Shown here in pieces: positions 38,345-51,193 of a stretch of DNA of 64,000 nucleotides. The stretch is from positions 1,674,001-1,738,000 of the forward strand of contig CDROCS010000506.1 in NCBI GenBank assembly GCA_977020255.1, written 5' to 3'. The DNA is from Obrimoposthia wandeli (lineage: Eukaryota). How positions within the stretch are numbered: the first letter of the stretch is position 1; the number at the start of each line of letters is the position of its first letter. Position numbers and translations under genes: made by a program. The notes under the pieces were generated by a model. That model saw only the letters and a list, made by a program, of their open reading frames with translations, did no database searches and was not told the origin of the DNA.

Positions 38345-39136
38345 ATGTATAGCTTTCTAAGAACATCACTAATTTTAGTACTAATGCTAGCCGGCAAAGC
38401 GCCGCTTGAAGCAGCTACAATGCTTAGCCTTAGTCAAGTATCAAATAATGGCAATGCGACGAACAGAGTACGAACACAGCTAAGTAAAGACTTAGCGGGA
38501 CTTTATCAACTCCCAGATATTAACAACACCAACATCATTCAACCTTACACCGACTTTGACGCTCTTTATGCCTTAGCAGGATCAGCGCAAGATGAGCTTG
38601 CGACACTGACTAAACAAATTGCCTTAATGTCACAAACCAGCGCCGTGATTCCGGCGATTAAAAGTGCAGAACGTGCACAAGCTAAAATTGCGAATAAATA
38701 TGACGGTGCAGTAGAAAAAATTACCGATTTAGCCCGCAGTTCAATTATTGCTAAAAATAGCCAAGAATTAATTACTGCTTATGAATTGCTTGAACAAGAA
38801 ACCGATATCATCCAAGTAAAGAATCGCTTTAACAGCCCGAAACAAAATGGTTACCGCGATATCAATTTATTAGTGCGCTTACCAAAAACTCAAATGGTGG
38901 TAGAAGTGCAATTACATTTAGATCGTATTGAAGCGATTAAGAATGGTCCAGAGCATGATAATTATGCCAAGATCCAACAAATCAACCACAATGCCAAACA
39001 GCAACAACGTGAAGTTTCAGAAATTGAAGCCTTTAAAGTTACGCAGTTAAAAGAAGAATCAACCAGTCTGTACCAAGTAGCTTGGCAACAACAGTTAATG
39101 ACTGAACTAAAAACCAGTTTTAAACAAATGGCATAA
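38345..39136 (+). CDS. relV: Small alarmone ((p)ppGpp) synthetase, RelV type
   Basis: 263 aa; IKSAERAQAKI, ITDLAR, VKNRF, NGYRDINL, VEVQLH synthetase motifs; no hydrolase domain; overall layout recalls Vibrio RelV. Confidence 0.85.
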   Translation: MYSFLRTSLILVLMLAGKAPLEAATMLSLSQVSNNGNATNRVRTQLSKDLAGLYQLPDINNTNIIQPYTDFDALYALAGSAQDELATLTKQIALMSQTSAVIPAIKSAERAQAKIANKYDGAVEKITDLARSSIIAKNSQELITAYELLEQETDIIQVKNRFNSPKQNGYRDINLLVRLPKTQMVVEVQLHLDRIEAIKNGPEHDNYAKIQQINHNAKQQQREVSEIEAFKVTQLKEESTSLYQVAWQQQLMTELKTSFKQMA

Positions 39137-39158
39137 GCCTTTATTTAACCATAATAAC

Positions 39159-39189
39159 AGGCCCAATCATTGCAGTAATGATTGGGCCT
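39159..39189. terminator. Hairpin between convergent relV and hypothetical gene
   Basis: AGGCCCAATCATT-GCAGT-AATGATTGGGCCT, 13-bp perfect stem. Confidence 0.7.
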
Positions 39190-39227
39190 ATTCTCTTCTA
39201 CATCTCTAAACTTTAAAACGCCAAGAA

Positions 39228-39566
39228 TTAAGCGTAACCCCATTTCCAGTTAAAACGGATTTGGTCTTGCAACCCAAAACGCGCCATCAACCAAGGCACC
39301 ATAGGTAATACTTTATAGTGTGCAGCTTTCTTCAATACACTCTTACCTGTTCGAAAGAAAGTAACTTCTTCATCACTATTTAAGAGTCGCACAACAATCC
39401 GTTTTTGCTTACCCTCTTCAGGTATTACAACTTGCGCTAGGTTATATTCATGTGTCATCCCAGACCCGTTATAAACCAAAATAATTTGCTCTTCAGTTAA
39501 CTTATTACGCTCTAAATAACTCTTTAACTCACTGCCCTGAAAACCAAATAAGGGATCTCTATTCAT
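39228..39566 (-). CDS. Hypothetical protein (~112 aa)
   Basis: Only long ORF in the gap, flanked by terminators, with RBS-like GGAAAG before ATG 39566; no family recognised. Confidence 0.6.
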   Translation of the reverse strand: MNRDPLFGFQGSELKSYLERNKLTEEQIILVYNGSGMTHEYNLAQVVIPEEGKQKRIVVRLLNSDEEVTFFRTGKSVLKKAAHYKVLPMVPWLMARFGLQDQIRFNWKWGYA

Positions 39567-39619
39567 GCTTCTTTCCATCTATCATCAAATACAATTAAAC
39601 GTTTATTTATTTTCTTGCC

Positions 39620-40538: not shown

Positions 40539-40574
40539 CAACAATTCTCCCATTATTACAAATTAATCGGCGAG

Positions 40575-40603
40575 ATCTTACCACGACTAGCGCCTGTCGA
40601 CAA
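40575..40603 (-). promoter_or_regulatory. Putative sigma70 promoter of rpoH
   Basis: Minus strand TTGTCG-17-TAAGAT with TG extension. Confidence 0.55.
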
Positions 40604-40642
40604 ATTCGACAATCCGTGTGACCGCACAAATAAACTATATTC

Positions 40643-40703
40643 TCTTAAATATTAAATATACTTGTCTTAAATATTAAATATAGTGCTCTTAAATACTTAA
40701 AAC
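40643..40703. repeat. Three direct repeats with 22-bp period (TCTTAAATATTAAATATA)
   Basis: Copies start at 40643, 40665 (identical 18-mers) and 40687 (degenerate). Confidence 0.8.
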
Positions 40704-40981
40704 AAATAATTCAATCTACTGATAAATAACTAAAAAGCTATCGACCTGAACATTTACTGTACTTTTTATGTACAATCTAGTTTAACGCCAGATTAGAAAA
40801 GCTCTAGTTTAATTACAGAAGATTACATTAACATGACAAATAAAAATAAACCCATCGGCTAATGCATACCCTTTAGTATGACTTTCGTTACTCGATAAGA
40901 TTCAATACTTTTATAAAATCAACATTAGTTTACAAATACCAAAGGATAGCAAACGCTACCCTTTGATACTTTTTTTAAACA

Positions 40982-42898
40982 CTAGTGCAAGTCAGGTATA
41001 ACACCTACTTGCGGCATATCAGCTAAACCAACATCACGAGCATGTTGTTCAAAACCTTTATTTTTCCAAAAGAAGGCGCCAGGCATAGTCGTCGGAATAA
41101 CCAGCACATAAAACAGTGCACGGCTGACTGTAGACGCTAAAGCAATTGATACCACGGGCAATAACCATAACAAGCTTAAATAACCTGCAGGGGCTAATAG
41201 AGCAAGTAAGGTTAACGCAAGCACGTTAATCGCCACTGTCACGTTACGTAAGTAGTAGGTTTTACCAAAAGTAGTACATTGCACATAATGCGACGCAGCA
41301 CCTTCGCCCTGCTCTACATTGAGATGTTTCGCGTGCATGTATAAACCAAACGCTTCGATCACTAAACCTGTAATAGCAATCGGCGTAAGCTCGAGTAGTA
41401 AAGGATACAATCCAACACCCTCATTACCCGCGGTACCAATCACAGCAACTAACGCCGTTAATATCGTGCCCAGTGCAATCGCAGAACCAAGGAAAGCACA
41501 AGCCGTTTGCCAATGATCCCAGAACGGACGTGCTTTGATACGATAACTGCGGTACATGTAATACAAACCACCAGCACTACCGATTAAGGCCAGAACACCA
41601 AAGGCATTAGCAATATAGCTAAACAAACTTAATTCAAACAGCCAAGCAACACCTTGGAAAAAAGTAAATGCCCCCATGAATCCAAAGAACAAGGCAACCC
41701 CTAACCCTTCTCGGCTTACAGGCGAGTGCGCTAAGTTATTAAAGCCACGATAGAAACGTTTAGGTTTACCCAGATGCAATGTCGACATTAATAAACCAAT
41801 CGCCTGCATAACCATTAATAATACCAACAGTGATAAGCCGGTACCTGATACCGAAAACCCTTTTAGACTCTCAACACCCAATAATGGGCCAAGGAAGATA
41901 AGTGCAAATGCACCCATCGCCGCTTGCGAGAACAAGGTAAAAATAACTAATGGATTCTCACGCGAGCTTAAGCGCCCTAAATTCCATGATTGTTCTTTAC
42001 CGTCTTTTTCATCCACAACAGAACGGAATGAGCCGTCTTCTTGTTTGTGATATTTAAGCGGCATATTATCAGTACGCGTCATTTCTCGCTGGGTACTGGT
42101 TGTTTGTTGAAAACGAATATTTGGATTGGTGATACTTGGATCTGGGAAACCGGGCATTGAAGTTTTTGCCTGAACACGGTTCTCAGGGGTATTTTCCACC
42201 ACACCAAAGTTCAGCGCATTACCTAAACAGGCCGAGACACAGGCTGGTTTTAATCCCACCTCTAAACGGTCCACACACATATTACATTTTGATACCTGAC
42301 CTTTAATCGGATCAAGCTGTGGCGCATTGTATGGGCAAACCCAAGTACAATAACCACAACCAAAACAGGTATCCGGATCTTGTAATACCGCACCGTATTC
42401 AACGTGCTTAGTATAGGCTTTAGTTGGACAACCTTTTAAACAAACCGGATCATCACAATGGTTACACGCCATGGAAATATTAATCCGTTTGTAATCAGGG
42501 TAGCTGCCACTCTCGACATAACCAACACTACGAAAGGCTATGTGTGCCGGGTTATCATTCTTTTCACTACACGCAGCTTCACAGGCGTGACAACCAATAC
42601 AGTTATCGGCGGTAAAATGAAAGGCATGTTGTTTATTCCGATTGGGGTTATCACCCACGGCTTTATTTTCATTAATGTTCATTGAACGGCCAACCGGTAA
42701 CTTACCTTCTGTGCGTTCAATTAAATCAATTTTTTTACCATAGGTATTCACATCAAATATTTCTACATCGGCTAATTTTGCATAACCTTGCTCACCTCTA
42801 CGCTGTTCAAAGATAGGCGTTCCTTCTTTAACAACAGGTTTTTCTGCCGCACCAATTTGATCAAGGCGGTCTCTAAATTGTTCTAACTTGTCTAACAT
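40982..42898 (-). CDS. Fused 4x[4Fe-4S] ferredoxin (DmsB-like) + DmsC/YnfH-type membrane anchor
   Basis: CIGCHACEAAC, CNHCDDPVCLKGCP, CFGCGYCTWVCP, CNMC...PACVSAC; then PLVIFTLFSQ, STLHLGKP.R, SPVSRE and ~8 TM helices. Confidence 0.9.
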   Translation of the reverse strand: MLDKLEQFRDRLDQIGAAEKPVVKEGTPIFEQRRGEQGYAKLADVEIFDVNTYGKKIDLIERTEGKLPVGRSMNINENKAVGDNPNRNKQHAFHFTADNCIGCHACEAACSEKNDNPAHIAFRSVGYVESGSYPDYKRINISMACNHCDDPVCLKGCPTKAYTKHVEYGAVLQDPDTCFGCGYCTWVCPYNAPQLDPIKGQVSKCNMCVDRLEVGLKPACVSACLGNALNFGVVENTPENRVQAKTSMPGFPDPSITNPNIRFQQTTSTQREMTRTDNMPLKYHKQEDGSFRSVVDEKDGKEQSWNLGRLSSRENPLVIFTLFSQAAMGAFALIFLGPLLGVESLKGFSVSGTGLSLLVLLMVMQAIGLLMSTLHLGKPKRFYRGFNNLAHSPVSREGLGVALFFGFMGAFTFFQGVAWLFELSLFSYIANAFGVLALIGSAGGLYYMYRSYRIKARPFWDHWQTACAFLGSAIALGTILTALVAVIGTAGNEGVGLYPLLLELTPIAITGLVIEAFGLYMHAKHLNVEQGEGAASHYVQCTTFGKTYYLRNVTVAINVLALTLLALLAPAGYLSLLWLLPVVSIALASTVSRALFYVLVIPTTMPGAFFWKNKGFEQHARDVGLADMPQVGVIPDLH

Positions 42899-42973
42899 AA
42901 TTTATCCCTGTTATGTTATCGCATGGGGCTTAACTCAATACGTCCGGGTATCTTTTGGCATTCAACATATGAC

Positions 42974-45163
42974 TTAGTACGTACGTCTTTCGCGGTTCAT
43001 TTTCGCCGCCAATTTTTGGTCTATATGCTCAATACGCAATGAACTCTGCTTAAAGGCAGGTTGACGAGAATGCGGATCAAGTAACCCAAGACACAAACGA
43101 TTTACACAATCATGGAAATGGAATGGAATAAATACAGAATTTGGCGCGACACGCTGCGTTAATTGCACCATGACCACGGCATCTCCACGACGAGAAGCTA
43201 TACGCACATAACTTTGATGTTTAACACCCAATTTGGCTGCAGCATCTGGGTTCATTTCCATATACGGAGTGGGACTATATTTGTTTAAGTTACCCATTTT
43301 ACCGGTACGCGTACGGGTATGAAAATGTTCAACTACACGGCCACTGTTAAGCCAGAACGGATATTCTTCACAAGGGTGTTCGTTATTATCAACCCAAGGT
43401 AATGGGATCAGATTCGCTTTACCGGTTGGCGTAGCAAACTTACCGTCAGTATAAAGGCGTGCGCCTTCGTCATTGTCCGTCGCACCTTCACGGTACGGCC
43501 ATTGTAGTCCACGGGCTTTTTCAATCTTCTCGTAAGTCATACCGGAAATATCAAGATTACGATCGGCACCTTTCGACAAGGTTTTCATTTCTTCAAAGGC
43601 TTCTTCAGTGGTTAGCGGAAAAGTGATTTTTTGGCCGTTTTCAAAACGCTTAGATAATTCTGAGAAGATCCAAAAGTCAGATTTAGAATTACCCTTCGGT
43701 GCTTGCACATTGGTCACGCGGTTAACTCGGCGCTCGGTATTCGTAAATACCCCCTCTTTCTCGGCCCATACAGCGGCAGGTAAGAACATATGTGCATACT
43801 GGGTTGTTTCTACATCTTGATACGCATCTTGCACCACTAAGAAATCTAACTTCTCTAATGTTTTACGAATACGTGAAGTATTCGGCATCGACGTCATTGG
43901 GTTTGTCGCCACCAGCCACAGACCTTTAATTTGCCCAGTTTCAATGGCAGGGAAAATATCCGTTTGTGCTAAACCACGTTTTTTAGGGAAGAACTCAGGA
44001 TCAATACCCCAGAACTTAGCAATATCATTACGGTCTTGTTCTTTCTCTAGCGCGCGGTAACCCGGTAAGCCAGAACAAGAAGACCATTCACGTGTGCCCA
44101 TGGCATTACATTGACCGGTAATCGATAAGCTAGTACCACCCGGCACACCAATATTACCGGTGATAAGCGAGAGTGAATTACAACCGGTGATCGCATCACT
44201 ACCGTGGGTACTTTGATTCAGTCCCATGGTCCAGATGCTCATGGCTTTGCCTGCTTTAGCAAACAAACGCGCTACGTGACGAATAGTATCTTCATCGATA
44301 CCGCAAATTTTCGCTGCTGAGGTTGGGTCAAAATCTTCGACACAGGCTCTTAATTCTTCAATACCATTGGTGTATTTTTCGATATAGTCTTTATCTTCTA
44401 GACCTTCTTTTAAGATCACGTGCATTAACGCATTCTGTAAAACAATATCGGTGCCCGGACTAATAGGTAAATGAATATCCGCAAACTGCGCCAACATAGT
44501 CACACGCGGATCGACCACGATAAGTGGGAAGTTACGCTTTTCTTTAGCTTCTTTTAAGCGCCAGTAAATAACCGGATGCTGCTCTGGCAGGTTTGAACCC
44601 CAAGCAATCAAACAATCGGTATGGGAGAAATCATCGTAACAGCCAGGTGGGCCATCAGAGCCAAATGAGCGCTTATAACCTGAAACCGCAGAAGCCATAC
44701 ATAAGGTGGTGTTACCATCGTAGTTGTTGGTACCAATACAGCCACGGGCTAATTTACCTAAAGTATAAAACTCTTCTGTAAGCAATTGACCAGTTGATAC
44801 GATGGCAAATGCATCTTTACCGTACTGATCTTGAATCGCTTTAATTTTGTCCCCCATGGTATCAAGTGCAGAGTCCCAGTTAGTCTCTGTATAATTGTCA
44901 TGAATGTGATCGCGAATAAGCGGGTTGTTACCACGCCCAGCCGCATCAAATAACTCATGTTCAAAGATGCCCTTGATACATAATTTACCTCTATTCACAT
45001 CGGCGTCAGCAACACCTCGACTCGCAACAGCATTCCCTTGCTCATTCATACCGATCTCGATAGAACAACCTGTAGAACAATATCCACACGTTGTATATTT
45101 CCATTCTTTAACCTGTTTATCCGCAATGCGAATAGGCTTTTGATCCTTGCGTCCGAAAATCAT
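42974..45163 (-). CDS. Molybdopterin nitrate reductase catalytic subunit, NarB/NasA type, no Tat signal
   Basis: 729 aa; CGYCSTGC...GKLC Fe-S motif, Mo-ligand NTTLCMAS, GQCNAMGTRE, EKEGVFTNTERR, FHTRTRTG; no C-terminal BFD 2Fe-2S domain. Confidence 0.88.
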   Translation of the reverse strand: MIFGRKDQKPIRIADKQVKEWKYTTCGYCSTGCSIEIGMNEQGNAVASRGVADADVNRGKLCIKGIFEHELFDAAGRGNNPLIRDHIHDNYTETNWDSALDTMGDKIKAIQDQYGKDAFAIVSTGQLLTEEFYTLGKLARGCIGTNNYDGNTTLCMASAVSGYKRSFGSDGPPGCYDDFSHTDCLIAWGSNLPEQHPVIYWRLKEAKEKRNFPLIVVDPRVTMLAQFADIHLPISPGTDIVLQNALMHVILKEGLEDKDYIEKYTNGIEELRACVEDFDPTSAAKICGIDEDTIRHVARLFAKAGKAMSIWTMGLNQSTHGSDAITGCNSLSLITGNIGVPGGTSLSITGQCNAMGTREWSSCSGLPGYRALEKEQDRNDIAKFWGIDPEFFPKKRGLAQTDIFPAIETGQIKGLWLVATNPMTSMPNTSRIRKTLEKLDFLVVQDAYQDVETTQYAHMFLPAAVWAEKEGVFTNTERRVNRVTNVQAPKGNSKSDFWIFSELSKRFENGQKITFPLTTEEAFEEMKTLSKGADRNLDISGMTYEKIEKARGLQWPYREGATDNDEGARLYTDGKFATPTGKANLIPLPWVDNNEHPCEEYPFWLNSGRVVEHFHTRTRTGKMGNLNKYSPTPYMEMNPDAAAKLGVKHQSYVRIASRRGDAVVMVQLTQRVAPNSVFIPFHFHDCVNRLCLGLLDPHSRQPAFKQSSLRIEHIDQKLAAKMNRERRTY

Positions 45164-45245: not shown

Positions 45246-45261
45246 AGCAATAACCAAGCCA
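45246..45261 (-). promoter_or_regulatory. sigma54 promoter of the nitrate reductase operon
   Basis: Minus strand TGGCTT-GGTTA-TTGCT with correct -24/-12 spacing. Confidence 0.75.
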
Positions 45262-45388: not shown

Positions 45389-45405
45389 TGCACCATGGCT
45401 GTGCG
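45389..45405. promoter_or_regulatory. NtrC binding site
   Basis: TGCACCATGGCTGTGCG = GCAC-N7-GTGC; half-sites TGCACT (45374) and TGGTGCA (45419). Confidence 0.7.
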
Positions 45406-45594: not shown

Positions 45595-46413
45595 ATGACA
45601 GTTGAATTAATTACCAAAGCGCAATCAAAAAATAACAATAGCCAAGGTCAAGTTGCATTAGTAGGAGCAGGTCCGGGGGATCCAGAATTGCTCACACTAA
45701 AGGCATTAAAAGCGATTGAAAGTGCCGACCTTATCTTATTTGATAACTTAGTTAGCCAAGACATTAGAGCTTTATTCCCACTCCACACTAAAGCAATTTA
45801 TGTGGGCAAGAAAAAAGCTGACCATTGTATTCCACAAGACCAATTGAATTTATTCATGGTTGATAAAGCAAAACAGGGTCTGAATATTTGCCGTCTAAAA
45901 GGCGGTGACCCTTTTGTATTTGGCCGCGGTAGTGAAGAACAACTGGTGCTCCATGCCAATAATATAAAAACAATCGTCGTTCCCGGCGTAACAGCTGCAT
46001 CTGGGTGCACTGCTTACGCTGGTATCCCGTTAACCCATAGAGGGCTATCAACGGGCTGCACCTTTATTACTGGTCACCTAAAGAATGGTCAGCTAGATCT
46101 AAATTGGTCGCAGCTCGCGCACCTTGAACACACTTTAGTGTTCTACATGGGATTAGGTAAATTAGCGGAAATCTCTGCGCAACTGATCAGTCATGGTCTG
46201 GACAGCAATACGCCAGCAGCCTTGATTGAGAACGGTTCAACACCGCAGCAAAGAGAGTTTGTTGGCACAGTAGCAACATTGCCAACACTCGCGATTGAAC
46301 ACCAATTACAAAGTCCTAGCCTGATCGTGATCGGCAAAGTTGTCTCTCTTGCAGAACAACTTAGCTGGCGAGATCTAGAGCAAGCGGCAAAAAATCAAGA
46401 ATTAAGCGCATAA
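45595..46413 (+). CDS. cobA: Uroporphyrinogen-III C-methyltransferase (siroheme synthesis)
   Basis: LVGAGPGDPELLTLKA, RLKGGDPFVFGRG.EE, VPGVTAA, GIPLTHR; methyltransferase module only. Confidence 0.95.
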   Translation: MTVELITKAQSKNNNSQGQVALVGAGPGDPELLTLKALKAIESADLILFDNLVSQDIRALFPLHTKAIYVGKKKADHCIPQDQLNLFMVDKAKQGLNICRLKGGDPFVFGRGSEEQLVLHANNIKTIVVPGVTAASGCTAYAGIPLTHRGLSTGCTFITGHLKNGQLDLNWSQLAHLEHTLVFYMGLGKLAEISAQLISHGLDSNTPAALIENGSTPQQREFVGTVATLPTLAIEHQLQSPSLIVIGKVVSLAEQLSWRDLEQAAKNQELSA

Positions 46414-46424
46414 CGGAGCATGTC

Positions 46425-48959
46425 ATGAAAAGAATTATAGTTGTCGGTAACGGCATGGTAGGTCACCATTTCATTGACCAATTTATTCAACAAGAAAAGA
46501 TGGGTGAAGTACAAATCACCACATTCAGTGAAGAATCACGTCTTGCTTACGATCGCGTTCAATTAAGTGCTTATTTCAGTGGTAAAACAGCTGATGACTT
46601 AATGATGACATCACCAGAATATTATGATGACAACGGCGTACAATATTTTGTAAACGATAAAGTTGTTGGCATCGATAAAGACGCTAAAACAGTTACGACG
46701 GCACAAGGCCGTGTAGAGAGTTACGACAAATTAGTGCTAGCGACGGGTTCATTCCCATTCGTGCCACCCATTCCAGGTAAAGACCAAGACCATTGTTTGG
46801 TTTACCGTACCATTGACGATTTAGAAGACATCACTGCATCAGCCAAAGAAAGTAAGGTCGGTGTCGTTATCGGTGGTGGTCTACTGGGTCTTGAAGCGGC
46901 TAACGCAATCAAACAGCTTGGTCTTGAAACGCACGTTGTTGAATTTGCACCACGCCTGATGGCAGTGCAAGTAGATGACGGTGGCGGCAAAATTCTGCGT
47001 AACAAGATTGAAGAGTTAGGCGTAACGGTACACACAGAAAAAAATACCAAAGAAATTGTTAAAGGTGAAACAAGCCGTTACCGCATGAACTTTGCTGACG
47101 GCTCGCACGTTGAAACAGACATGATTATCTTCTCTGCCGGTATTCGCCCACAAGATGAATTAGCCCGTTCATTCGACCTTACGCTAGGCGAACGTGGTGG
47201 TATTCAAGTTGATGATAACTGTTTAACGTCTGACGAAAATATTTTCGCTATTGGTGAATGTGCATTATGGCAGGGCCGTATCTTCGGTCTTGTTGCACCA
47301 GGTTACCAAATGGCAAAAGTCGCCGTCGACCATATCGTTGGTGAAGGTAAGTTAGCCTTTACCGGAGCCGATATGAGTACCAAGCTGAAATTGCTCGGTG
47401 TTGACGTGGCCAGTATCGGTGACGCCCATGGTAATGCCGAAGGCGCTCAAAACTATGTGTTCACCAACGAAGCAGACCAAGTTTATAAAAAATTAGTGAT
47501 TAGCGCATGTGGTAAGAAACTACTTGGTGCAGTCATGGTTGGTGAAGCCGAAGATTACGGTACTTGGTTACAAATTTACTTAAACGACATGGATATTCCG
47601 GGCTCACCTGAAAATATGTTAGTACCACCAGCAGAAGGTGGCGCGGTAACGATGGGTGTTGATGCCCTGCCTGATTCTGCTGTTATTTGTTCATGTCTGG
47701 ATGTAACCAAAGGTCAAATCTGCGCCGCAGTACAAGCGGGAGCAACCAGCATAGGTGATATTAAAACCATCACTAAAGCCGGTACCGGTTGTGGTGGTTG
47801 TAGCGCGCTAGTGACTCAAGTCCTCAATGCAGAGCTTGAAAGTATGGGTGTTGAAGTGAACACCGACCTGTGTGAGCATTTTGCTTACTCACGTGCAGAA
47901 CTGGCTGACATAATACGCGTTAAACGCATTAAAACCTTTGAAGCATTAATCACCGAGTTTGGTGCGGGTCATGGTTGTGAAGTTTGTCGTCCGACTGTCG
48001 CTAATATTCTGGCGTCATTTTGGAATGATTACATTCTCGAAGACGATCATCTTGGTCTGCAAGACGTCAATGATGTTTACCTGGGTAATATGCAAAAAGA
48101 TGGTACTTACTCTGTTGTACCACGTATCCCAGCAGGTGAGATCACCCCTGACAAATTAATCGTACTTGGTGAAGTAGCTAAAAAATATGGTTTATACACC
48201 AAGATAACCGGTGGTCTACGTATCGATTTATTTGGTGCGCAACTACATCAACTACCTGATATATGGGCATGGTTGATCCGAGAAGGCTTCGAAACAGGCC
48301 ATGCTTACGGTAAATCACTGCGTACCGTAAAATCGTGTGTGGGTAGTACTTGGTGTCGTTATGGTGTGCAAGACAGCATGTCTCTGGCGATTGATCTTGA
48401 GAACCGCTACAAAGGGCTACGCTCACCACATAAAATTAAGTTTGGCGTGTCAGGTTGTACACGTGAATGTGCTGAAGCCCAAGGTAAAGACATCGGCGTG
48501 ATTGCGACGGAAGGTGGCTGGGGTCTTTATGTCTGTGGTAATGGTGGTATGCGTCCGCGTCATGCCGATTTATTCGCAACCGACCTAGATACTGACACGC
48601 TGTACAAATATATTGACCGTGTATTGATGTTCTATATCCGCACTGCAGACCGTCTACAACGTACATCGGTTTGGTTAGAAAATCTTGACGGTGGTTTAGA
48701 TTACCTTAAAGACGTGGTTATGAATGACAAACTGGGTCTTAACGCAGAGCTTGAATCGGCAATGGCCGCAAACATTGCTAACTACCAATGTGAGTGGAAA
48801 ACCACGATTGAAAGCCCTGAAAAACTACTGCGCTTTAAGCACTTCATTAACTCTGAAGAAAGCGATACCGCAGTGCAGTTTGTTGAAGTGCGTGATCAAA
48901 TCCGCCCTGCGACCCCCGCAGAGCGAGCAGGTCAAATTGCCGTTCTTGAAGTGAGCTAA
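46425..48959 (+). CDS. nirB: NADH-dependent nitrite reductase, large subunit
   Basis: 844 aa; GNGMVG, GGGLLGLE, CSC...CGGC, CEHF...CEVC, siroheme ligands CVGSTWC and GCTREC. Confidence 0.97.
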   Translation: MKRIIVVGNGMVGHHFIDQFIQQEKMGEVQITTFSEESRLAYDRVQLSAYFSGKTADDLMMTSPEYYDDNGVQYFVNDKVVGIDKDAKTVTTAQGRVESYDKLVLATGSFPFVPPIPGKDQDHCLVYRTIDDLEDITASAKESKVGVVIGGGLLGLEAANAIKQLGLETHVVEFAPRLMAVQVDDGGGKILRNKIEELGVTVHTEKNTKEIVKGETSRYRMNFADGSHVETDMIIFSAGIRPQDELARSFDLTLGERGGIQVDDNCLTSDENIFAIGECALWQGRIFGLVAPGYQMAKVAVDHIVGEGKLAFTGADMSTKLKLLGVDVASIGDAHGNAEGAQNYVFTNEADQVYKKLVISACGKKLLGAVMVGEAEDYGTWLQIYLNDMDIPGSPENMLVPPAEGGAVTMGVDALPDSAVICSCLDVTKGQICAAVQAGATSIGDIKTITKAGTGCGGCSALVTQVLNAELESMGVEVNTDLCEHFAYSRAELADIIRVKRIKTFEALITEFGAGHGCEVCRPTVANILASFWNDYILEDDHLGLQDVNDVYLGNMQKDGTYSVVPRIPAGEITPDKLIVLGEVAKKYGLYTKITGGLRIDLFGAQLHQLPDIWAWLIREGFETGHAYGKSLRTVKSCVGSTWCRYGVQDSMSLAIDLENRYKGLRSPHKIKFGVSGCTRECAEAQGKDIGVIATEGGWGLYVCGNGGMRPRHADLFATDLDTDTLYKYIDRVLMFYIRTADRLQRTSVWLENLDGGLDYLKDVVMNDKLGLNAELESAMAANIANYQCEWKTTIESPEKLLRFKHFINSEESDTAVQFVEVRDQIRPATPAERAGQIAVLEVS

Positions 48960-49054: not shown

Positions 49055-49381
49055 ATGATTACTTGGACTCCAATTATTGCCAAAGAACAACTCACGCCAG
49101 ACGCTGGTGTCTGTGCATTAGTGAACGGTAAGCAAGTTGCTATTTTCTTTGACCGTAAAACCGACAAATTATTTGCGATTGATAACTACTGCCCGGCAAG
49201 TAAAGCCAATGTGTTATCGCGTGGCTTAATCACCTCGGTGAAAGATGTATTAACGGTTTCATCACCACTGTATAAAGAACATTTCAGCCTAACCACAGGT
49301 GAATGTCTCGAAGATGAAACTTTATCAGTCCCTGTTTATGCGGTACGTGTCACTGATGGCATGGTCGAAGTAACGGCATAA
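49055..49381 (+). CDS. nirD: Nitrite reductase small subunit
   Basis: AGVCALVNGKQVAIF, NVLSRG, SPLYK.HF.L.TG.CLED; Rieske fold without cluster ligands (E. coli type). Confidence 0.95.
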   Translation: MITWTPIIAKEQLTPDAGVCALVNGKQVAIFFDRKTDKLFAIDNYCPASKANVLSRGLITSVKDVLTVSSPLYKEHFSLTTGECLEDETLSVPVYAVRVTDGMVEVTA

Positions 49382-49441
49382 TGAATTACGCTGGCTGAGT
49401 ATTATGATTACTACCACGACAATTAATTGCAGGGAGTTGCT

Positions 49442-51193
49442 ATGTCGCCATGGCATTTACAGGGCGGCGCCACCTTTACCATAGGTCAGCGCTCGGTCGA
49501 AGGGATCAAAGCCCAAAATGAAGATGCCATTGGTATTCGTATCCCTGATGATTTATTGCTGACAACGAAAGGTGCAGTGGCGATTATCGCCGATGGAGTA
49601 AGTGCGTCAGAGGCCGGTAAAGAGGCCAGTGAAACCTGCGTACATAATTTTTTATCTGATTATTACTCTACCCCTGAAACCTGGTCTGTCGGTAAATCTA
49701 CAGGTCAGGTGCTCACCGCATTAAACCGTTGGTTATATAGCCAAGGTCGACAGTTTGCCGATGCACAAAAAGGTTACTTAACCACGCTCAGTACCATTGT
49801 ATTTAAATCCCATTCTGCGCATTTATTGCATGTCGGTGATTCGCGTATTTATCGCTTACGCAACAACAGTCTTGAACAATTAACTCGTGACCACACCACT
49901 GTCGTGAATAATAAACAATCCTATCTCGCCAGAGCAATGGGCTTAGACGTGACCCTTGAGGTCGATTATAAAGAAGTGGAATTACAAGTTGGGGATGTAT
50001 TTTTACTGTCCACCGATGGCTTGCATGATTTCGTCAACGATAAACAGTTACGTGAAATATTACGTGACAGGCTGCAGCAAACTAATAATAGCGAAAATAG
50101 TGATTTTGAAGCTTGCTGTGAGCAATTAATCCAGCAAGCACTGACCAATAACAGTAATGATAATATCAGCTGCCAGTTATTGCGCATTGATAGTCTACCC
50201 AAGCAAAGCGCTGAAGATGTACATGTACACCTTGCTTCAATGCCTTTTCCGCCCGCACTGCGCAAGGGATTATCCATTGATGGCTTAAAAGTCATTAAAG
50301 AAATACACGCCAGCAGTAGCAGTCATCTGTATTTAGTCGAAGACAAAGAAACCAAACAGCAATACTGCATGAAAGCGCCTTCCGTCAATTATATTGATGA
50401 TCATGCCTATATCGAACGTTTCACCATGGAAACTTGGATTGGTACACGCTTAAACAATCCACATATATTAAAAATTGTCGAAACCAACAGGCAAAAAAGT
50501 AACCTTTATTACCTTATGGAAGTGATTGAGGGTATTACCTTAGAGCAGTGGATTAATCAGCACCCTAACCCGCCAGTGCAAGATGTATTAAATATCGTCG
50601 AGCAAGTAATTAAAGGGCTACGAGCATTTCACCGTAAGGAAACCCTGCATCAAGATTTGAAACCTGGCAATATTATGATCGATAATAACGGCCAAGTTAA
50701 GATTATTGATTTTGGTTCTTGTTTCGTCAAAGGTATTGCAGAAATTGCCACGCCACTACAGCGCGATAAGATCCTTGGCACAGCCTCCTACTCAGCCCCA
50801 GAGACGGTCATCAATGGTGACAGCACAGCACAATCAGATATCTTCGCGATGTCTGTGATCATCTTTGAAATGCTCACAGGTAAGCAGCCTTTTAACGGTA
50901 AACTAGCAACCTGCCGCACGCAAAAAGCCTATCTCAATACCAAGTATATTCCTGCTTATGAGCTTAACCCTTTAGTACCATTTTGGTTAGACGGCGCTAT
51001 AAAGAAAGGCTTACGTTTCGATCCCAGCAAGCGTCACGCCGATGTATCTGAACTCTTGCATGAGTTACAACACCCGAACCCTAAATATAAAAACAACCGC
51101 AAGCAGACCCTAGTTGAAAAAAACCCCGAACGTTTCTGGCAAGTTATCTCACTCTTACTACTATTGGCGCTGTGTATTTCGTTGTTTAGTTAA
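49442..51193 (+). CDS. Bifunctional PP2C phosphatase / Ser-Thr kinase with C-terminal TM helix
   Basis: PP2C: NEDA, IADGVS, HVGDSRIY, LSTDGLHD, NDNIS; kinase: MK, HQDLKPGN, IIDFG, GTASYSAPE, DIFAM; start placed at ATG 49442 behind AGGGAG. Confidence 0.92.
   Translation: MSPWHLQGGATFTIGQRSVEGIKAQNEDAIGIRIPDDLLLTTKGAVAIIADGVSASEAGKEASETCVHNFLSDYYSTPETWSVGKSTGQVLTALNRWLYSQGRQFADAQKGYLTTLSTIVFKSHSAHLLHVGDSRIYRLRNNSLEQLTRDHTTVVNNKQSYLARAMGLDVTLEVDYKEVELQVGDVFLLSTDGLHDFVNDKQLREILRDRLQQTNNSENSDFEACCEQLIQQALTNNSNDNISCQLLRIDSLPKQSAEDVHVHLASMPFPPALRKGLSIDGLKVIKEIHASSSSHLYLVEDKETKQQYCMKAPSVNYIDDHAYIERFTMETWIGTRLNNPHILKIVETNRQKSNLYYLMEVIEGITLEQWINQHPNPPVQDVLNIVEQVIKGLRAFHRKETLHQDLKPGNIMIDNNGQVKIIDFGSCFVKGIAEIATPLQRDKILGTASYSAPETVINGDSTAQSDIFAMSVIIFEMLTGKQPFNGKLATCRTQKAYLNTKYIPAYELNPLVPFWLDGAIKKGLRFDPSKRHADVSELLHELQHPNPKYKNNRKQTLVEKNPERFWQVISLLLLLALCISLFS

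Follow-up and report, generated by a model that had tools for sequence, protein, structure and literature searches.

A candidate quinol-driven assimilatory nitrate reductase encoded by a NarB-like gene and a fused DmsBC-type anchor of predicted inverted orientation

What supplies the electrons to an enzyme that resembles cytoplasmic nitrate reductases and is encoded next to a membrane anchor? In textbook and review schemes, assimilatory nitrate reductases use soluble donors only (NAD(P)H via a flavoprotein, ferredoxin, or flavodoxin). The question is raised by two genes in a 64,000-nucleotide stretch of contig CDROCS010000506.1 (assembly GCA_977020255.1, Obrimoposthia wandeli), here called the window. 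Its DNA is judged to be that of a Moritella-like gammaproteobacterium because the nearest proteins are from Moritella (92% identity; loci L001 and L002 at 91-97% identity). Gene 1 encodes a molybdenum (Mo) enzyme, and gene 2 encodes a DmsB-like Fe-S domain fused to a DmsC-type anchor. We consider it probable, though far from certain, that the pair constitutes a quinol-driven, cytoplasm-facing, membrane-bound assimilatory nitrate reductase; the quinol donor, the two-protein complex, nitrate as the substrate, the assimilatory role, and a non-electrogenic step are the parts of this reading that we infer. The genes and the parts of gene 2 are as follows.

42974..45163, minus strand: gene 1, the catalytic gene, encoding a nitrate-reductase-like protein of 729 amino acids (aa) of the Mo-bis(pyranopterin guanine dinucleotide) (Mo-bisPGD) type
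40982..42898, minus strand: gene 2, the fusion gene, encoding 638 aa (N-terminal extension, DmsB-like domain, linker, and DmsC anchor)
42629..42898, minus strand: conserved soluble N-terminal extension of gene 2 (residues 1-90), without a signal peptide; more distant fusions lack the extension
42179..42628, minus strand: four [4Fe-4S] motifs (residues 91-240)
41954..42178, minus strand: conserved basic linker from the Fe-S domain to the start of transmembrane helix (TM) 1 (residues 241-315)
41084..41953, minus strand: eight TM helices with a DmsC/NrfD-like fold (residues 316-605)
40985..41083, minus strand: nearly invariant basic C-terminal tail on the Fe-S side (residues 606-638)

Mapping of open reading frames (ORFs) placed both genes on the minus strand, gene 1 first and 75 bp between them, exactly at the coordinates that an earlier sequence-only reading of this DNA had given for a two-gene operon. 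Its account of the parts was likewise borne out: gene 1 is a 729-aa protein with the three motifs named there, no twin-arginine (Tat) peptide, and no BFD tail, and gene 2 joins four cluster motifs (16 Cys) to an eight-helix DmsC anchor.

The substrate was considered from the side of the catalytic subunit. Pfam recognized Molybdop_Fe4S4, Molybdopterin, and Molydop_binding in gene 1 and did not find the [2Fe-2S] tail Fer2_BFD. Three motifs stand out. The first, CGYCSTGC...C62, would hold the [4Fe-4S] cluster FS0, and its cysteines (C26, C29, C33, and C62) are invariant; the second, NTTLCMASAV, includes the Mo ligand Cys155 within NTTLCMAS; and the third is TGQCNAMGTRE. In an alignment with annotated, not individually characterized, Nas/Nap homologues and E. 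coli FdhF, the C-M-(A/S)-S and TGQxNAMGxRE signatures of gene 1 were of the Nas/Nap type, and the formate dehydrogenase (Fdh) motifs, Sec-His and NVQG in FdhF at those sites, were absent.

An AlphaFold model of gene 1 (predicted local distance difference test score [pLDDT], 87.7) was compared with Swiss-Prot by Foldseek. The top reviewed structural matches were NarB of Synechocystis (P73448; 37% identity) and of Synechococcus elongatus (P39458; 35%), over the full length and with a TM-score of ∼0.9, followed at 31-33% by Bacillus subtilis NasC, Desulfovibrio NapA, Haloferax NasA, and Klebsiella NasA. A first tree grouped the fusion-linked enzymes tightly together (SH-like approximate likelihood-ratio test [SH-aLRT] support, 100) on a long stem, in a polytomy with Nas, Nap, and FdhF. 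Catalytic genes found beside distant fusions were added to a second tree, and the long stem was thereby split. Every fusion-linked catalytic enzyme then fell into one clade (SH-aLRT 97-99) within the Nas/Nap group (SH-aLRT 90), as sister of haloarchaeal NasA with moderate support (90), and FdhF fell outside. The catalytic subunit thus groups with nitrate reductases, and its clade lies beside, not inside, classical Nas, with 33-40% identity to NarB, NasA, NasC, and NapA. The earlier name of "NarB-like" is fair because NarB leads the reviewed structural matches, but it should not be read as orthology: judged from these trees, which hold no cyanobacterial NarB, the enzyme belongs to a separate lineage in a clade of its own.

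Profile searches gave a less tidy result. The NCBIfam scores of gene 1 were 579 for Fdh-alpha, 518 for NasC (cut-off, 1100), 476 for NasA_Halo (cut-off, 1000), and 430 for NapA, each short of its cut-off; other NCBIfam scores were 150 for dmsA_ynfE (cut-off, 778), 50 bits for narG (cut-off, 1084), and 50 for narH (cut-off, 524). The best PDB sequence match was a formate dehydrogenase, followed by Desulfovibrio NapA. Annotated plasmid-borne relatives were only 34-39% identical, and the closest of them were assimilatory nitrate reductases beside nirBD. The missed nitrate-reductase cut-offs, the Fdh-alpha score, the PDB match, and the long stem with its moderately supported sister relation are what one might expect if the enzyme acted on chlorate, selenate, formate, or another oxyanion and its nitrogen-gene neighbors were coincidental. 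We regard this as very improbable: the residues around the Mo ligand and the TGQCNAMGTRE motif are those of Nas/Nap and not the Sec/Cys-His and NVQG of FdhF, FdhF lies outside the Nas/Nap group that contains the clade, and a nitrogen-assimilation context recurs in at least two phyla (Pseudomonadota and Nitrospirota).

Next, the location of the pair and the orientation of its anchor were examined. A twin-arginine motif search and a hydropathy scan detected no Tat or Sec signal in either protein and no RRxF motif in gene 1, and by hydropathy there is no hydrophobic segment anywhere in gene 1 and none before residue 315 of gene 2. Topology was assigned from hydropathy and the positive-inside rule. 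The segments on the Fe-S side of the fusion (the linker; loops 2-3, 4-5, and 6-7; and the C-terminal tail) contain 19 Lys plus Arg residues, and the four loops on the opposite side contain 1. Over 54 homologues, the mean was 18.7 (minimum, 17) on the Fe-S side and 0.63 (maximum, 3) on the other; distant fusions (32-46% identity) had 15-27 versus 0-2, and none had an N-terminal signal. E. coli DmsC, whose published orientation places the termini in the periplasm (PMC8076601), has, in its own loops, 4 Lys plus Arg facing DmsB and 8 facing away from it, or 4 versus 3 over the same alignment columns. E. coli DmsC has the opposite bias, and so the positive-inside rule predicts for the fusion a reversed anchor that leaves the Fe-S domain and the two termini cytoplasmic. 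The basic loops that the sequence-only reading had described were confirmed, and its proposal of a flipped, N-in anchor is supported by the conserved 19-to-1 bias and the lack of any Tat or Sec signal.

A periplasm-facing complex, exported by an unrecognized route, would be in keeping with the fact that DmsC/NrfD-type anchors almost always occur with periplasmic partners. Such a complex is hardly credible here, as neither protein has a signal or a hydrophobic N terminus, a folded four-cluster domain would need Tat, and the conserved charge bias points the opposite way. A review of the NrfD family lists DmsC with periplasmic enzymes only, and it names SoeC as the sole NrfD-like subunit expected to be inverted, in a complex hypothesized to face the cytoplasm with an N-side quinone site (PMC8076601). 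An inverted NrfD/DmsC-type anchor is thus not unprecedented as an idea, a precedent of which the sequence-only reading took no account.

One of the closest stand-alone DmsC relatives was found in an unfused trio (L098:618-4210) of a 699-aa Mo enzyme, a 191-aa ferredoxin, and a 292-aa DmsC-like anchor. The Mo enzyme has no Tat signal and is unrelated to Nas, and the Lys plus Arg residues of the anchor are biased toward the ferredoxin side (14 versus 3). Other enzymes, too, may be served by DmsC-type anchors that face the cytoplasm.

If the anchor faces the cytoplasm, does it oxidize quinol? Pfam placed Fer4_11 at residues 142-233 and DmsC (PF04976) at residues 314-599 of gene 2. The cluster cysteines are 100/103/106/110, 145/148/153/157, 178/181/184/188, and 205/208/220/224; in the 54-homologue alignment, 15 of the 16 do not vary and the other, C220, is conserved to at least 90%, and the LHLGKP and SPVSRE motifs are invariant. 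Family-averaged hydropathy gave helices at residues 316-340, 351-374, 398-418, 425-448, 464-491, 498-521, 552-570, and 575-605. E. coli DmsC (K-12 record) aligned with the anchor helix for helix, with 76 identities, and the haem-ligand pattern was absent from this DmsC-type domain. H375, S392, E397, and R593 of the fusion correspond to His65, Ser82, Glu87, and Arg271, quinol-site and gate residues of E. coli DmsC, and all four are invariant in the family. Replacement of DmsC His65 stops quinol oxidation, and the roles of the quinol-site residues have been summarized; the Ser at the entrance of the quinone pocket is conserved among NrfD-like subunits, and the TM8 Arg is a conserved mid-membrane residue (PMC8076601). 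An AlphaFold2 model of the fusion, built on the 54-sequence alignment, had a pLDDT of ∼90 over the membrane domain and <30 over the Fe-S domain. The best folds in a PDB search with it were ActC and PsrC, which were weak matches only.

Retention of all four residues would be unexpected in a mere tether, and eight helices would be costly for tethering alone. The case for a tether or a degenerate relic, with a soluble donor such as ferredoxin, flavodoxin, or NirB/NirD feeding the clusters, draws on related enzymes: the nearest reviewed ones (NarB) use ferredoxin, and Paracoccus-type systems pass electrons through NirB/NirD homologues. In the same vein, a curation paper on Alteromonas macleodii, which has a nasA without a NasC partner, proposes ferredoxin as a guess (PMC12021255). 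Against this stand the invariance of the quinol-oxidation residues of DmsC (His65 and Glu87), of the Ser, and of the TM8 Arg through the family, as well as the retention of the membrane domain with the Fe-S domain down to 32% identity. We consider a tether quite unlikely.

Whether the two genes belong together, and with nitrate assimilation, was assessed from their spread. More than 3,595 fusion relatives were found among 90%-identity clusters, under names that were all generic or wrong, and at least 577 species-representative genomes encode one; the plasmid collection contained no full-length fusion. Context was sampled at 80 loci, each from another species; these were Gamma- and Betaproteobacteria, apart from a few metagenome-assembled genomes (MAGs) assigned elsewhere. 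In 77 of them, a catalytic gene 70-97% identical to gene 1 lies directly upstream of the fusion on the same strand, and two of the three remaining loci are truncated by the end of the contig. Because of this regularity, the pairing is not due to chance. The neighborhood in the window itself also concerns nitrogen.

45595..46413, plus strand: cobA, uroporphyrinogen-III C-methyltransferase of the siroheme branch, divergent from the pair; above the NCBIfam cut-off
46425..48959, plus strand: nirB, NADH-dependent assimilatory nitrite reductase; above the NCBIfam cut-off
49055..49381, plus strand: nirD, NADH-dependent assimilatory nitrite reductase; above the NCBIfam cut-off
49427..51193, plus strand: PP2C phosphatase/Ser-Thr kinase fusion

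No nitrate transporter was seen within ∼15 kb of the pair (ORFs farther out carry no annotation), no nap accessory genes were found in the window, and rpoH lies downstream of the pair. At about a third of the 80 loci, nirBD, cobA, an MFS transporter, or the PP2C-kinase gene occurs within 10 kb, and an MFS transporter is common in the relatives' clusters. With only the membrane domain as the query, an exhaustive profile-free search brought in more distant fusions. The membrane domain always came together with the Fe-S domain, down to 32% identity, and several of the distant fusions (32-46% identity) are from Nitrospirota or "Muproteobacteria." By automatic cluster taxonomy, Acidobacteriota is the phylum in which ESM-Atlas clusters with this architecture occur most often. 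Three distant loci had the following gene orders.

L090: P-II / Mo enzyme / fusion
L093: MFS / Mo enzyme / fusion / PP2C-kinase / NirB / NirD ... P-II / Amt
L094: CysG / NirA-like reductase / fusion ... Mo enzyme

These clusters indicate that the nitrogen-assimilation link survives deep divergence and that the catalytic and fusion components evolved together. Taken with the sigma-54-type promoters described below, nirBD, cobA, the MFS transporter, and P-II/Amt make up a nitrate assimilation context.

Two further genes recur in these clusters. The PP2C/kinase fusion gene was present in 21 of the 80 loci and on the Nitrospirota contig (L093:6197-7960), beside nirBD or the MFS transporter. It is likely, from this company, to be a regulator of nitrate assimilation; we know of no characterization of it in that role. 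An ORF of ∼125 aa without a Pfam match follows the fusion directly on the 3' side in 29 of the 80 loci, in Gamma- and Betaproteobacteria (for example, L072:11919-12317, L013:11994-12383, and L034:11906-12295), and carries the motifs NPDY(L/F)VTWD and QQWWEWxPRT. It is absent from Moritella at this position, and tblastn of the window gave no match. The product might be an additional, third subunit of the system or might assist its assembly.

The region upstream of gene 1 was then inspected for regulatory elements, and two were noted.

45246..45261, minus strand: sigma-54-type -24/-12 element, TGGC-N7-TTGCT, 83-98 nt before the start codon of gene 1
45389..45405, no strand assigned: NtrC-like inverted repeat with 2 mismatches to TGCACC-N5-GGTGCA, in the divergent intergenic region

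Each pattern has just 2-3 occurrences in the 64-kb window. The NtrC-like repeat is weak alone, and its position in the intergenic region is suggestive. Across relatives, 17 of 61 loci had the strict -24/-12 pattern in the 350 nt that precede the catalytic gene; at a background of 0.011 per 380 nt, less than one match was expected, an enrichment of ∼25-fold. Together, the enrichment and the repeat would fit Ntr-type nitrogen control.

Several loci bear on whether the role is assimilation in general. In several genomes (L013:13803-16445, L016:13571-16276, L017, L024, and L036:1334-4081), the same cluster as the pair also holds a classical NasA, 880-915 aa long; upstream of this second NasA lies a Pyr_redox_2/Rubredoxin_C NADH reductase. 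Organisms with the pair and such a NasA, accompanied by a pyridine-nucleotide reductase of its own, include Methylophaga, Motiliproteus, and a Ketobacteraceae MAG. Two nitrate reductases of differing predicted electron source thus stand side by side, and the two routes appear not to be equivalent.

The same enzyme with the same topology could instead serve redox balancing or cytoplasmic nitrate respiration, draining excess electrons from the quinol pool as periplasmic Nap does, with the resulting nitrite then detoxified or assimilated by NirBD. The quinol-linked nitrate reductases Nar and Nap are normally dissimilatory, a second classical NADH-type NasA with its reductase at several loci implies that the fusion-linked enzyme is not simply redundant, and at two thirds of the loci there is no nirBD within 10 kb. 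On the other side, the catalytic gene is preceded by sigma-54-type promoters more often than expected; even distant members are surrounded by genes for P-II, Amt, siroheme synthesis, and assimilatory nitrite reductases; the flanks of the relatives' loci showed no genes for cytochromes or denitrification; and, with both half-reactions in the cytoplasm, no proton-motive force would be expected from the step. We judge the redox-balancing role to be unlikely but still credible.

Several points tell against assimilation by a quinol-driven enzyme. The nitrate-reductase equivalogs of NCBIfam all score far below cut-off for gene 1, with Fdh-alpha on top in raw score. The fusion model is confident for the membrane domain only. 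nirBD lies within 10 kb in only about a third of the loci. Because some organisms have a classical NADH-type NasA in the same cluster, the role of the fusion-linked enzyme may be specialized rather than general assimilatory. Finally, marine metatranscriptome contigs (at least 99% identity) cover fragments of both genes at a depth of 3-6, versus 106 over rpoH; this thin support for expression of the pair is weak, and DNA carry-over is possible.

Metatranscriptome contig depth is ∼5 over the fusion gene and jumps to ∼106 at 40700-40899, within the 428-bp gap between the fusion gene and rpoH (40554-40981), where a terminator scan detected no intrinsic terminator. Such a jump would fit a strong promoter inside the gap that serves rpoH separately. 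Farther along, a perfect 14-16 bp GC-containing inverted repeat at 39156-39192, resembling a bidirectional terminator hairpin, sits between the convergent ORFs 38345-39136 (plus strand; a RelA/SpoT-domain protein) and 39228-39578 (minus strand; 116 aa, no family match).

How would a quinol-driven assimilatory nitrate reductase of this kind work? The DmsC-type domain would lie in the membrane with both termini cytoplasmic, the reverse of E. coli DmsC, and quinol would be oxidized at the conserved His/Ser/Glu site near the cytoplasmic face. Electrons would then pass through the four [4Fe-4S] clusters of the attached DmsB-like domain to FS0 and on to Mo-bisPGD; the NarB-like subunit would reduce nitrate to nitrite in the cytoplasm, and NirBD, with NADH and siroheme, would reduce nitrite to ammonium. 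The potential of nitrate/nitrite is about +420 mV and that of ubiquinone/ubiquinol about +100 mV, so the step from quinol to nitrate would be strongly exergonic. Because both half-reactions would be cytoplasmic and the anchor is without haems, a redox loop of the NarI type would be impossible, and the quinol:nitrate step would be non-electrogenic unless an NrfD-like proton path is used. Coupling to ion movement through the conserved TM8 arginine and NrfD-type proton paths might occur. By drawing on the quinol pool, nitrate assimilation would run through the energy-conserving NADH dehydrogenases, and this would be the benefit: reductant would not be spent as NAD(P)H or ferredoxin.

The literature was searched for an earlier account of such an enzyme. 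A 2020 phylogenomic study associates no member of the Fdh/Nas/Aio/Nap clade with canonical four-cluster or membrane-anchor subunits (PMC7331816), and Nas has been treated as cytoplasmic with its usual partners (PMC10100899). In a full-text search, with most subscription journals outside its scope, no paper was found on an assimilatory nitrate reductase with a DmsC/NrfD-type anchor or quinol, nor one describing this pair. The automatic name given to one ESM-Atlas cluster of related fusions is [quoted passage not shown] so some annotation source has already made the same guess, although no supporting study turned up. Other names have gone astray: the fusion homologues P0066, P0087, P0093, and P0290 are called "aspartate carbamoyltransferase" in public records, and one Atlas cluster has inherited this name, a propagated misannotation.

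Each computational test applied to the interpretation in the sequence-only reading came out in its favor. The system is a very widespread assembly of known modules, new in combination, and not a categorically new kind of system. It could represent one more major class of nitrate reductase in prokaryotes, quinol-dependent and assimilatory with an inverted, fused DmsBC, to stand with Nar, Nap, and the Nas enzymes that depend on NAD(P)H or ferredoxin; we regard this as an evenly balanced question. Such a class would span at least 577 species genomes in marine and freshwater Gamma- and Betaproteobacteria and in Nitrospirota, and Acidobacteriota are probably among the carriers, judged from the automatic cluster taxonomy. 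Were the reading true, a large proportion of marine heterotrophs would reduce nitrate for growth with respiratory-chain electrons; the marine carriers include Colwellia, Pseudoalteromonas, Moritella, Oleispira, Ketobacter, and Cellvibrionales, to which freshwater Burkholderiales and Nitrospirota are added. The energy and reductant cost assumed for heterotrophic bacterial "new production" would change, and the "partnerless" nasA genes of metabolic reconstructions would be explained. The anchor would also be a second, independent inverted NrfD/DmsC anchor that could be compared directly with the SoeABC hypothesis. The analysis also corrects the names that these genes widely carry in error, namely, "DMSO reductase anchor subunit," "aspartate carbamoyltransferase," and generic "molybdopterin oxidoreductase."

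The pair shares features with each of several known systems and differs from all of them. Like NarB, the catalytic subunit is a single, presumably cytoplasmic polypeptide of ∼715-730 aa with an N-terminal FS0, a Cys-ligated Mo-bisPGD, and no BFD tail; NarB, however, acts alone with soluble ferredoxin or flavodoxin, whereas the window enzyme travels with a dedicated, membrane-anchored four-cluster partner. With the NasA/NasC enzymes (Klebsiella NasA-NasC, Bacillus NasBC, and Paracoccus NasC-NasG-NasB) it shares a cytoplasmic location, by prediction, the same active-site motifs, and clustering with nirBD, cobA/cysG, and nitrate transporters, but identity is 32-40%, and unlike the NADH-dependent members, the pair has neither a BFD tail nor an adjacent FAD/NADH reductase. 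The NapAB(C/GH) systems differ in export, since E. coli and Selenomonas NapA have a Tat signal in the same alignment in which the window enzyme has none.

The remaining comparisons concern the anchor and its clusters. DmsABC and PsrABC have the same set of parts (Mo-bisPGD with FS0, a four-cluster ferredoxin with 16 Cys, and a haem-free 8-TM anchor with His/Ser/Glu/Arg quinol residues); they differ from the pair, which lacks a Tat signal, is predicted to be inverted, carries B and C in one polypeptide, and has a catalytic subunit from the Nas/Nap group rather than from the Dms/Psr/Nar-type branches. NarGHI also carries out quinol-dependent nitrate reduction at a cytoplasmic active site through a four-cluster subunit, as the window pair would, but NarG belongs to an unrelated branch with an Asp ligand where the window enzyme has Cys, and NarI is a di-haem b protein that oxidizes quinol at the periplasmic face in a redox loop, whereas the window anchor is haem-free. 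SoeABC is alike in having its peripheral parts on the N-side of an inverted anchor, a matter of prediction here and of hypothesis for Soe too; it differs in its catalytic subunit of the SoeA/SreA clade, its sulfite substrate, its unfused subunits, and its direction of electron flow, from the substrate to the quinone.

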